Shown piece by piece: positions 5,350 through 6,940 of a stretch of 64,000 nt of DNA (positions within the stretch are counted from its first letter, which is position 1; each line of letters opens with the position of its first letter). Made by a program: the position numbers and the translations under genes. The notes under the pieces were generated by a model. The model worked only from the letters and a program-made list of their open reading frames with translations. It was not told the DNA's origin and did no database searches. The stretch covers positions 2,690-66,689 of the forward strand of contig ADNK01002373.1 in the NCBI GenBank assembly GCA_000320545.1. The letters run 5' to 3'. Origin of the DNA: Bigelowiella natans CCMP2755 (Eukaryota; Protista; Cercozoa).

Positions 5350-6940
5350 GATCGACAACGACGACACATTGCAGACCGCGGGCACAAACATGCAACAAAC
5401 ACGACAGGCCAGTGCGTAGCTCGATCATGGATCGGACAAAGTTGTGCATCATGACCCATGCTCATCACAGACAAAGTCACATCGTGTGTGTGATGTGTGT
5501 GCATTGCATGTCTAGCTAGCATTCTCTAGATTCTGCTAGCATCATTTGGCTAGCGCAGCGCAATGACTCAGATGCGTGCGCGGCACATGCTAGCGCTAGC
5601 TAGCATGCCTGCGTGGTGCGTGGGTGTGTCTGAAGTGCATGCCAAGATCTGGAGATGTGGCACACCATGGCACACATGCCATCCTGGCATGCGCTAGTGC
5701 GCTAGACGATCTAGATGCTGGCGCATCTGGAGCATGCTGGCATGGCATGAGCATGCACACTTGCATCGTGCGTGTGTGCACGTTGCAAACGATGTCAGGT
5801 GTGTCCAAAGTCAAACACAGCTAGCCAGCTGGTCAACCAGACAATGCAGCATCGCTGGATCGTGTGCGCATCAGGTCGCGATTGATCAAAGAGGAAGTCC
5901 CTTCCAGAATCGAACTGCGACGAATCACTGCGATGGGTCCTTCCCTTCATTCGCCCATCCTCTGGTCGCCAAAATGAACGAAGAATCAATCAGTTCCAGT
6001 GCAAGTTGCAGCTGAGAGGATCACCAGTTGGGGAGTGGTCCATGGCTAGATGGGTCCTCAATTGGCGGCCCATGACCTTGAATTCCCCTGGTCCTCAATG
6101 CGCCCCAGACACCATGTGGAGATCGCAGAACATTGAACATTGAACATTGAAGAAGCATTGATGCAAACCACACGAGCAAGAACCACATGAGAGACATCAA
6201 TGAACAATGAACAATGAACATTGATGAAAAACTGCACCTCCAAAGTGTGACATGACACTTGCAAAGTGCGAAATGCAGTGCCTCGAACTGGCTTCAGTGA
6301 GGACTGACTAGCAAGCTAGCGGGGATCGTGCAAAATGGCACGAACCAAACATTGAATGCATCATCACTGACAGCTACGACCAAGGCATCAACAACAATGA
6401 ACAATGATGATGAACAATGAACAATGAACAATGAAGAAAGCGTTGATCAAAACTGCGTGCGCCAGAACCACATGGGAGACAGGCATTTGCACGCAGCAGA
6501 GCCTCAACAACACTCGTTGCAAGGACTTGACAAAAAATCAGCCGCATCCCATGAAATTGGCATGGATGCCGATTGATGGTGCCGTTGAGATGTGAATTGA
6601 TTGGAACTAAAACTGGCATCTTGGATGCCGAACAGCAGCAAAATTGTCAAGCAGGACAATGGTTCGACGGAAAGCCCTGTCGATTTCTTTGTCAGTCGAA
6701 GGGACACCAGATGTGGCCCCCAAAGCAAGGCAGAACTTGTCATGGGAAGACATGGCTGAGAAAGCACGCAACGTGACCACATCATCATTGGCATCAGGTT
6801 GATGACGAGACACCAGGTGACGAATCCTGGTCCAAAAACGGTCTCTGATGTCGCACGTTCCTTGGCAGGAGAACAAAAGGTGCATCAGGGAACTACATTT
6901 CCAAAGTGTTGCAAGACTCTGATGTGCTTTTTGGCAGCAA
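5350..6940. other. TpA-depleted, CATG/TGCA/CTAG-rich intergenic island, probably containing decayed repeats
   Basis: By-eye count is 7 TA in 5821-6900, all preceded by C. In 5350-5830 nearly all TA are in CTAG. Confidence 0.85.
6129..6480 (+). repeat. (AACA[A/T]TG)n heptamer arrays within a diverged ~67-bp duplication (6129-6195 vs 6413-6480)
   Basis: Three heptamer arrays. Both duplicate copies run from the array through gaagaa-gc.ttgat to agaaccacatg.gagac. Confidence 0.8.

Follow-up and report, generated by a model that had tools for sequence, protein, structure and literature searches.

How does a spacer directly downstream of a gene come to be almost devoid of the dinucleotide TpA? This question is raised by a locus of Bigelowiella natans (the organism was shown to be this species), which lies in a stretch of 64,000 nucleotides that we analysed as a whole and that is called here the window. 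An earlier note on this DNA had listed seven TA-poor spacers and proposed a directional TpA to TpG/CpA process that spares CTAG and acts on terminator or repeat chromatin. By direct count, positions 5821-6900 (1,080 bp) hold 7 TA in comparison to 66.6 expected from base composition (o/e 0.105), in agreement with the claim of seven where several dozen should stand; all seven are in CTA and four of them in CTAG. At 5350-5830 there are 13 TA, 12 of which are in CTAG, mostly GCTAGC, thus the survivors are indeed almost all CTAG. The o/e of CpG at 5821-6900 and 5350-5830 is 0.65-0.75, with 0.79 for the window, and this dinucleotide can be regarded as not specially depleted, as had been stated. The strong signature described at 23710-24125 and 34681-35160 was recovered as well (TA o/e 0.24 and 0.065, respectively), and the CpA+TpG rho of the three depleted islands is raised to 1.64-1.76, compared to 1.20 for the window. 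The partial or weak TA loss reported for the four other spacers was not found: the TA o/e is 1.09 at 47220-47700, 0.84 at 59700-60450, 1.12 at 11250-11750 and 1.09 at 26150-26750, while the window mean is 0.84. In two of these four the share of TA that falls in CTAG is raised (39%, p = 9e-10, and 16%, p = 0.003; window 4.6%). A sliding scan of the window gave no other intergenic island of comparable strength.

A process with this outcome has been published for the same organism. In a mutation accumulation study of B. natans (Mettrop et al., bioRxiv 10.64898/2026.01.13.699255, 2026), TpA was converted to TpG or CpA in integrated viral DNA: 231 of the 302 de novo SNMs were located inside two integrated viral regions, and 230 of these 231 were A>G or T>C, all at TpA. 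The rate was ~6e-7 per site per generation, a subset of lines was affected, and the viral DNA that was hit is single-copy and silent. The same preprint describes 124 genome clusters that are TpA-poor and rich in CpA+TpG, each of at least three consecutive 1-kb windows, and an enrichment of RT, endonuclease-RT and DDE domains among TpA-poor coding sequences. Its leading candidate mechanism is A-deamination, and the ADAT2-like protein Bn78255 is proposed as the DNA adenine deaminase. To avoid mis-mapping in highly repetitive regions, its callable genome leaves out every site at which the depth exceeds two times the mean. Word searches of the preprint text for CTAG, flanking context and retrotransposons gave no hit, and no statement on within-element polarity or tyrosine loss was seen in the sections consulted. 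A literature search for Bigelowiella and TpA yielded this single linking paper, and one for TpA depletion in LINEs in general yielded nothing relevant. The core inference of the earlier note, a TpA>TpG/CpA process, is therefore right but was already published in 2026. When the footprint cut-offs of the preprint (a TpA rho of at most 0.43 combined with a CpA+TpG rho of at least 1.52) were applied, 5821-6900 (0.11/1.64), 23710-24125 (0.24/1.69) and 34607-35168 (0.11/1.69) were all found within them, and the four other spacers were outside the TpA cut-off, their CpA+TpG rho nonetheless being raised (1.46-1.77). These four spacers consist of YR-step-rich DNA with many microsatellites and normal TA, which may be the source of the weak signature seen earlier.

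We consider it very probable that the TpA-specific A:T>G:C hypermutation of B. natans has, over a long time, left its footprint in the three islands, visible as LINE tails plus some spacer DNA. The spacer at 5350-6900, referred to as island A, and its gene neighbours are made up as follows:

4921-5300, plus strand: last exon and 3'UTR of the upstream gene (RNA contigs and 3'-tag reads; splice acceptor before 4921/4923; plus-strand frame)
5350-6100, no strand assigned: single-copy TA-poor spacer, CTAG-rich, starting just past the gene 3' end
6100-6405, minus strand: fragments derived from the LINE-A tail/3'UTR, with ~120-bp sub-repeats and AACAATG repeats
6405-6894, minus strand: 5'-truncated LINE-A copy, with the last 118 codons of ORF2 running from 6894 to 6541, followed by the 3'UTR
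7045-8733, plus strand: downstream gene, with ATG at 7081 and GT..AG introns (RNA contigs, splice sites)

The upstream gene has a double stop near 5000 in the plus frame and its transcript contigs stop at 5290-5296. As judged from RNA contigs, splice sites and frame, island A is a head-to-tail spacer directly downstream of the 3' end of a plus-strand gene, and the gene-3'-end placement given in the earlier note stands for this island. An arrangement between divergent genes was ruled out by the splice acceptor and the reading frame, and because run X21 is of the 3'-tag type. The coding part of the LINE-A copy (6541-6894) is 94% identical (tblastn) to the end (residues 537-654) of an RT-bearing ORF of 654 aa at C1194:9905-11866. 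There is one TA in the 485 bp of this copy, and the TA-free zone stops at its truncation point, which forms the right edge of the island. A search of the 91.4-Mb assembly (3,736 contigs) with 6405-6894 gave 815 candidates, 90-97% identical and with one common end. The adjoining fragments at 6100-6405 are TA-free and of high copy number, with very high depth in DNA run X1. Run X21, which behaves as a sense-strand 3'-tag library, contains minus-strand, i.e., LINE-A sense, RNA at 6240-6775; since this RNA covers the TA-free LINE-A tail, at least some copies of the purged family are transcribed. At 5350-5830 both CTAG (12 vs 1.9 expected) and CATG (15 vs 1.9) are enriched. The ORFs of the unique islands 5350-6100 and 23710-24125 gave no protein domain in Pfam, and no mobile or foreign origin was detectable for these unique parts. 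Island A is thus a composite of a LINE-A tail, tail-derived repeats and a unique CTAG-rich spacer.

A second repeat-derived island, referred to as island C, is of simpler make-up:

34607-35168, minus strand: 5'-truncated LINE-C copy (last 562 bp), recognised by a ~17-bp target-site duplication and by identity to full-length copies

Its ORF2 part comprises the C-terminal ~175 codons, with a CxxC...H...C knuckle among them, and is followed by a short 3'UTR; the duplication lies at 34596-34613 and 35171-35188. There are 2-3 TA in island C, and both flanks are normal in TA. The island matches the full-length copy at L035:2445-7408 with 100% identity, over LINE positions 4403-4964. Full-length LINE-C, a young element, has 4,964 bp with an intact ORF1 (480 aa) and an intact ORF2 (1,164 aa), the latter with Exo_endo_phos_2 (AP-endonuclease) and RVT_1 domains, as in an APE-type non-LTR element; LINE-A is only distantly related to it, the RT domains being 22-23% identical. 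Eleven LINE-C copies are ~100% identical over a 2.5-kb internal query, the 5' ends of LINE-C copies are staggered, and among first-look candidates the tail is in ~20-fold excess over the body (1,355 vs 70). A related TA-free tail (L045) is 80% identical. As island C is identical to the tails of active full-length elements and its flanks are normal, the lack of TA was inherited at insertion and not made locally. The earlier note had named active full-length elements that are equally TpA-free as an observation that would speak against its reading; this is what was found for island C, and it counts against local production there. The stretches L035:1200-2445 and L038:5800-7000 are also TA-poor; the former adjoins the 3' end of the full-length LINE-C copy, which suggests that new LINE insertions often land beside already purged DNA.

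Three further features of the window are the following:

23710-24125, no strand assigned: single-copy TA-poor island B (TA o/e 0.24, CpA+TpG rho 1.69), ~860 bp upstream of a DUF1295 gene
24746-25627: DUF1295 ORF, to which the first exon of Bigna1 protein 42280 of B. natans is identical up to the exon boundary; the two fall in one 99%-identity cluster
11163-11214, minus strand: older LINE-C-like 3' end of 52 bp, in which four sites that read TG or CA in the LINE-C tail are still TA

No paralogy was found among the islands of the window, and Rfam gave no match on the whole window. Elsewhere in the genome, TA-free tracts of 3-12 kb are piled LINEs, with LINE-A tails among them, and LINE families besides LINE-C are TA-free over 2-3 kb or more. 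One such tract (G000:C1194:~9900-22400, i.e., L041-L043) has ~15 TA in total over ~12.5 kb and holds LINE fragments with RT ORFs, which are uninterrupted solely through the loss of TAA and TAG. In 65.6 kb of TA-poor domains the o/e of TA is 0.05, and that of CA and TG is 1.61 and 1.63, respectively.

The direction of the change was assessed by comparison of repeat copies. The LINE-C body has a TA every 6-62 bp up to position 4222, while the last 742 bp contain only 5 TA, all five in CTA or TAG context. In an alignment of 14 LINE-C copies, with changes polarised by majority and older copies (67-92% identical) left out, a change of TA to TG or CA is seen in 15 of the 167 cells at positions 3901-4250, compared to 0 of 900 at positions 1-3900 (Fisher p = 5e-13). 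The polarisation of substitutions between repeat copies, which the earlier note had called for, thus gave an excess of TA>TG/CA. These conversions amount to 10 distinct events in 5 of the 14 copies, with some events common to several copies, and no other substitutions are present at 3901-4250, in comparison to a normal low rate at 1-3900. A single LINE-C copy can carry A>G as well as T>C. The T>C change at position 4120 is spread over copies in a pattern at odds with the other subfamily markers, as would be expected if this site had been hit independently more than once. The LINE-A tail alignment has ten columns with both TG and CA, several of them also with TA (TA/TG/CA counts of, e.g., 4/7/4 and 5/11/4), and T>C at TA reaches 0.83 per site in comparison to 0.10-0.15 in other contexts. 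Taken together, the LINE-C front, the mixed LINE-A columns and the older 52-bp tail show that the tails once had TA and that its conversion to TG or CA took place many times, in independent events. Thus, the claim of a directional TpA to TpG/CpA process is supported by the LINE copies as well as by the published mutation accumulation. In the active LINE-C, conversion is restricted to the 3' end and the stretch bordering it upstream: it has reached saturation in the last ~740 bp, and in the ~350 bp before them it is under way in individual copies. In an old LINE-C copy (L039:619-1294 in G000:C2862; 97% identical), four new TA that arose by C>T or G>A stand unconverted. As these were not purged again, there are loci at which the process does not act continuously. 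When the loci were compared all against all for TA-rich copies with a TA-poor counterpart, too few of the pairs were informative.

The surviving TA were used to examine the sequence preference of the loss. In TA-poor domains 38% of the surviving TA are in CTAG, compared to 5% in normal DNA. Survival is 0.36 for CTAG, ~0.10 for CTAN/NTAG and at most 0.03 for ATAT, CTAT, ATAC, GTAT and TTAA. A two-flank multiplicative model with values of 0.60 for C, 0.17 for T, 0.16 for G and 0.03 for A per flank fits all ten palindrome-merged classes, under the assumption that the NTAN spectrum of purged DNA was initially that of its surroundings. CTAG is spared, as the earlier note had it, and this sparing is shown to be the extreme of a graded flank preference in which a 5' A is the most sensitive and a 5' C the least. 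Sparing alone cannot explain the CTAG content of 5350-5830, since it is ~6-fold above composition there. CTAG clusters of 25-27 per kb, mostly GCTAGC, were seen at 5151-5950, 35151-35800 and 47051-48000 (window 3.2 per kb); all three apparently adjoin gene 3' ends, and only 5151-5950 is TA-depleted.

A sequencing or assembly artefact has a negligible chance of explaining these data. Of the words of 4000-8000 in the window, 0.83-0.90 are present in 14 independent DNA runs from 13 studies, the sequence is found in RNA contigs too, and hundreds of copies agree. The 14 runs, of 2025, fit the mutation accumulation lines of the preprint, for which JGI did the sequencing. It could also be proposed that no host mutator exists and that active LINEs are selected at the RNA level against UpA, by avoidance of nucleases or poly(A) signals, so that the islands merely inherit the composition of their sources. 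This would be in line with the full identity of island C to tails of the active element and with sense transcription of the LINE-A tail, and the effect would look symmetric because TA is self-complementary. We nevertheless regard it as highly improbable, as TpA>TpG/CpA arises de novo in single-copy, silent viral DNA (Mettrop et al.), the same sites have independently become TG or CA in LINE-A copies that are truncated and dead, the changes in individual LINE-C copies affect TA and nothing else, and the unique non-coding islands have the same signature. Three other candidates were considered and rejected: decay of methylated CpG (CpG o/e 0.65-1.08 in the islands), fungal RIP (of opposite direction, since here TpA is lost and CpA/TpG gained) and ADAR-type RNA editing inherited via retrotransposition (A>G and T>C are found in single copies, and TAG and CTA contexts are the least affected).

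The place of island A bears on another proposal, namely chromatin-targeted erasure of TA in transcription-termination zones, possibly through a modified thymine similar to base J or hmU. Island A begins just downstream of a gene 3' end and the three CTAG clusters apparently lie beside gene 3' ends. However, the TA-free edges coincide with LINE edges, on both sides of island C and at the right edge of island A, four of the seven listed spacers have no TA depletion, and the 3-12 kb TA-free tracts elsewhere are piles of LINEs. The clean transition spectrum, moreover, would fit A>I better than a modified T. We therefore judge this proposal unlikely. The substrate that was seen consists of LINE tails and not of terminator chromatin, and that part of the earlier reading finds no backing; insertions that are tolerated beside gene 3' ends may be a simpler explanation of the placement. 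Nothing supports a base-J-like thymine modification; the genome gave no match to Tet_JBP (PF12851), although neither did the control genomes. The boundary in LINE-C calls for a separate consideration, because the TA-free tail could have been gained in one step, by recombination or template switch with an old, fully purged LINE, with the boundary near 4250 as the breakpoint. The boundary is sharp, further LINE families lack TA over at least 2-3 kb and the L045 tail is related, all of which is compatible with such an event. Nevertheless, the DNA immediately upstream of the boundary is the only place where TA-specific changes of several copies are clustered, the spread of 4120 T>C suggests recurrent hits, and the older 52-bp tail still carries TA. 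One-step acquisition is accordingly rather unlikely, but it is not mutually exclusive with a moving front, and the boundary could partly be an old recombination breakpoint.

Under the preferred reading, TpA-specific hypermutation by the host, TpA would become TpG or CpA according to the strand hit, and the process would act on mobile and foreign DNA plus some spacer DNA. In the family of the LINE-A tail of island A, copies have resolved ancestral TA sites independently to TG or CA; island C took its TA-free state from a source element that was already edited and still active. In the active family the editing is regional, with the last ~740 bp saturated and ~350 bp upstream under conversion. 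Sites with a 5' C or a 3' G are least affected, so that CTAG persists, and as in-frame stops are never created, ORF2 remains open while tyrosine declines. What aims the process may be related to the 3' polarity of LINE-C, the ~20-fold tail excess, coupling to target-primed reverse transcription, or past recombination. The enzyme would be a DNA adenine deaminase that acts on either strand at TpA, as the preprint proposes. Adenine deamination is supported by the pure transitions, by hits on both strands and by the fact that tRNA adenosine deaminases act on A after U. A profile search of the genome revealed six loci of the CDA fold (TadA/ADAT-like) and one A_deamin locus. The latter, G000:C2414:14438-15741 (+), is the sole match to PF02137 (ADAR/ADAT1-type) and consists of three exon-like pieces, the best of which scores 57.7 bits. 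The candidate search of the preprint was apparently limited to ADAT2/ADAT3-like proteins.

A further suggestion is put forward tentatively, as possible and not as probable. The TpA editing of the active LINE would be regional and polar from 3' to 5', perhaps coupled to target-primed reverse transcription or aimed through RNA or homology from the >1,000 truncated tails, and the element would carry, tolerate and keep extending a TA-free and tyrosine-free tail. Independently of this, the CTAG-rich spacers downstream of genes may owe their origin or protection to another process, e.g., a CTAG-specific adenine methylation that blocks deamination.

The effect on the encoded proteins is visible in both families. 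In LINE-C the tyrosine content is 4.2% before the boundary and 0.4% beyond it, the LINE-A ORF has none (0 of 654), and the frames remain open. The genetic code implies that in-frame stops cannot arise when TA undergoes A>G or T>C, in contrast to RIP and APOBEC editing, and thus an edited element can presumably still amplify. To the published process this analysis adds retrotransposons in repeated DNA as substrates, which lie outside the callable genome of the preprint. It also adds that editing of an active LINE is limited to the 3' end and appears to move upstream. The graded flank rule is a constraint that any candidate deaminase must reproduce, and a process that creates no stop codons would allow an element to remain active while it is edited.

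Rewriting of invading DNA by the host through A:T>G:C changes at TpA is a rare form of genome defence, the nearest analogues of which are RIP and APOBEC. APOBEC3 converts C to U (G>A on the plus strand) in a strand-asymmetric manner coupled to reverse transcription. The islands share with it a deaminase-type hypermutation of retroelements with a dinucleotide context; the changes here, however, are A:T>G:C and fall on both strands. In A>I editing the product reads as A>G; ADAR favours a U before the edited A and a 3' G, and A34 of tRNA always follows U33. In contrast to these ADAR/ADAT (TadA-type) systems, the changes described here are fixed in DNA on both strands, and a 3' G disfavours the loss. 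Fungal RIP turns CpA into TpA (C>T) in repeats, by which it makes TpA and introduces stop codons. The likeness is that a host process causes dinucleotide-specific transitions in repeated or foreign DNA and leaves compositional islands, whereas here TpA is destroyed (A:T>G:C), no in-frame stops are possible and, according to the preprint, single-copy DNA is hit as well. The closest system is the TpA hypermutation of the preprint itself. Its measurements concern single-copy NCLDV and virophage regions, while the islands described here are mostly repeated LINE DNA, and under its cluster definition of at least three consecutive 1-kb windows only one 1-kb window here falls within the cut-offs. The organism, the dinucleotide target and the TpA>TpG/CpA outcome on both strands are nevertheless shared with the islands, as are the end state of low TpA with high CpA+TpG and the link to RT/endonuclease coding sequences.
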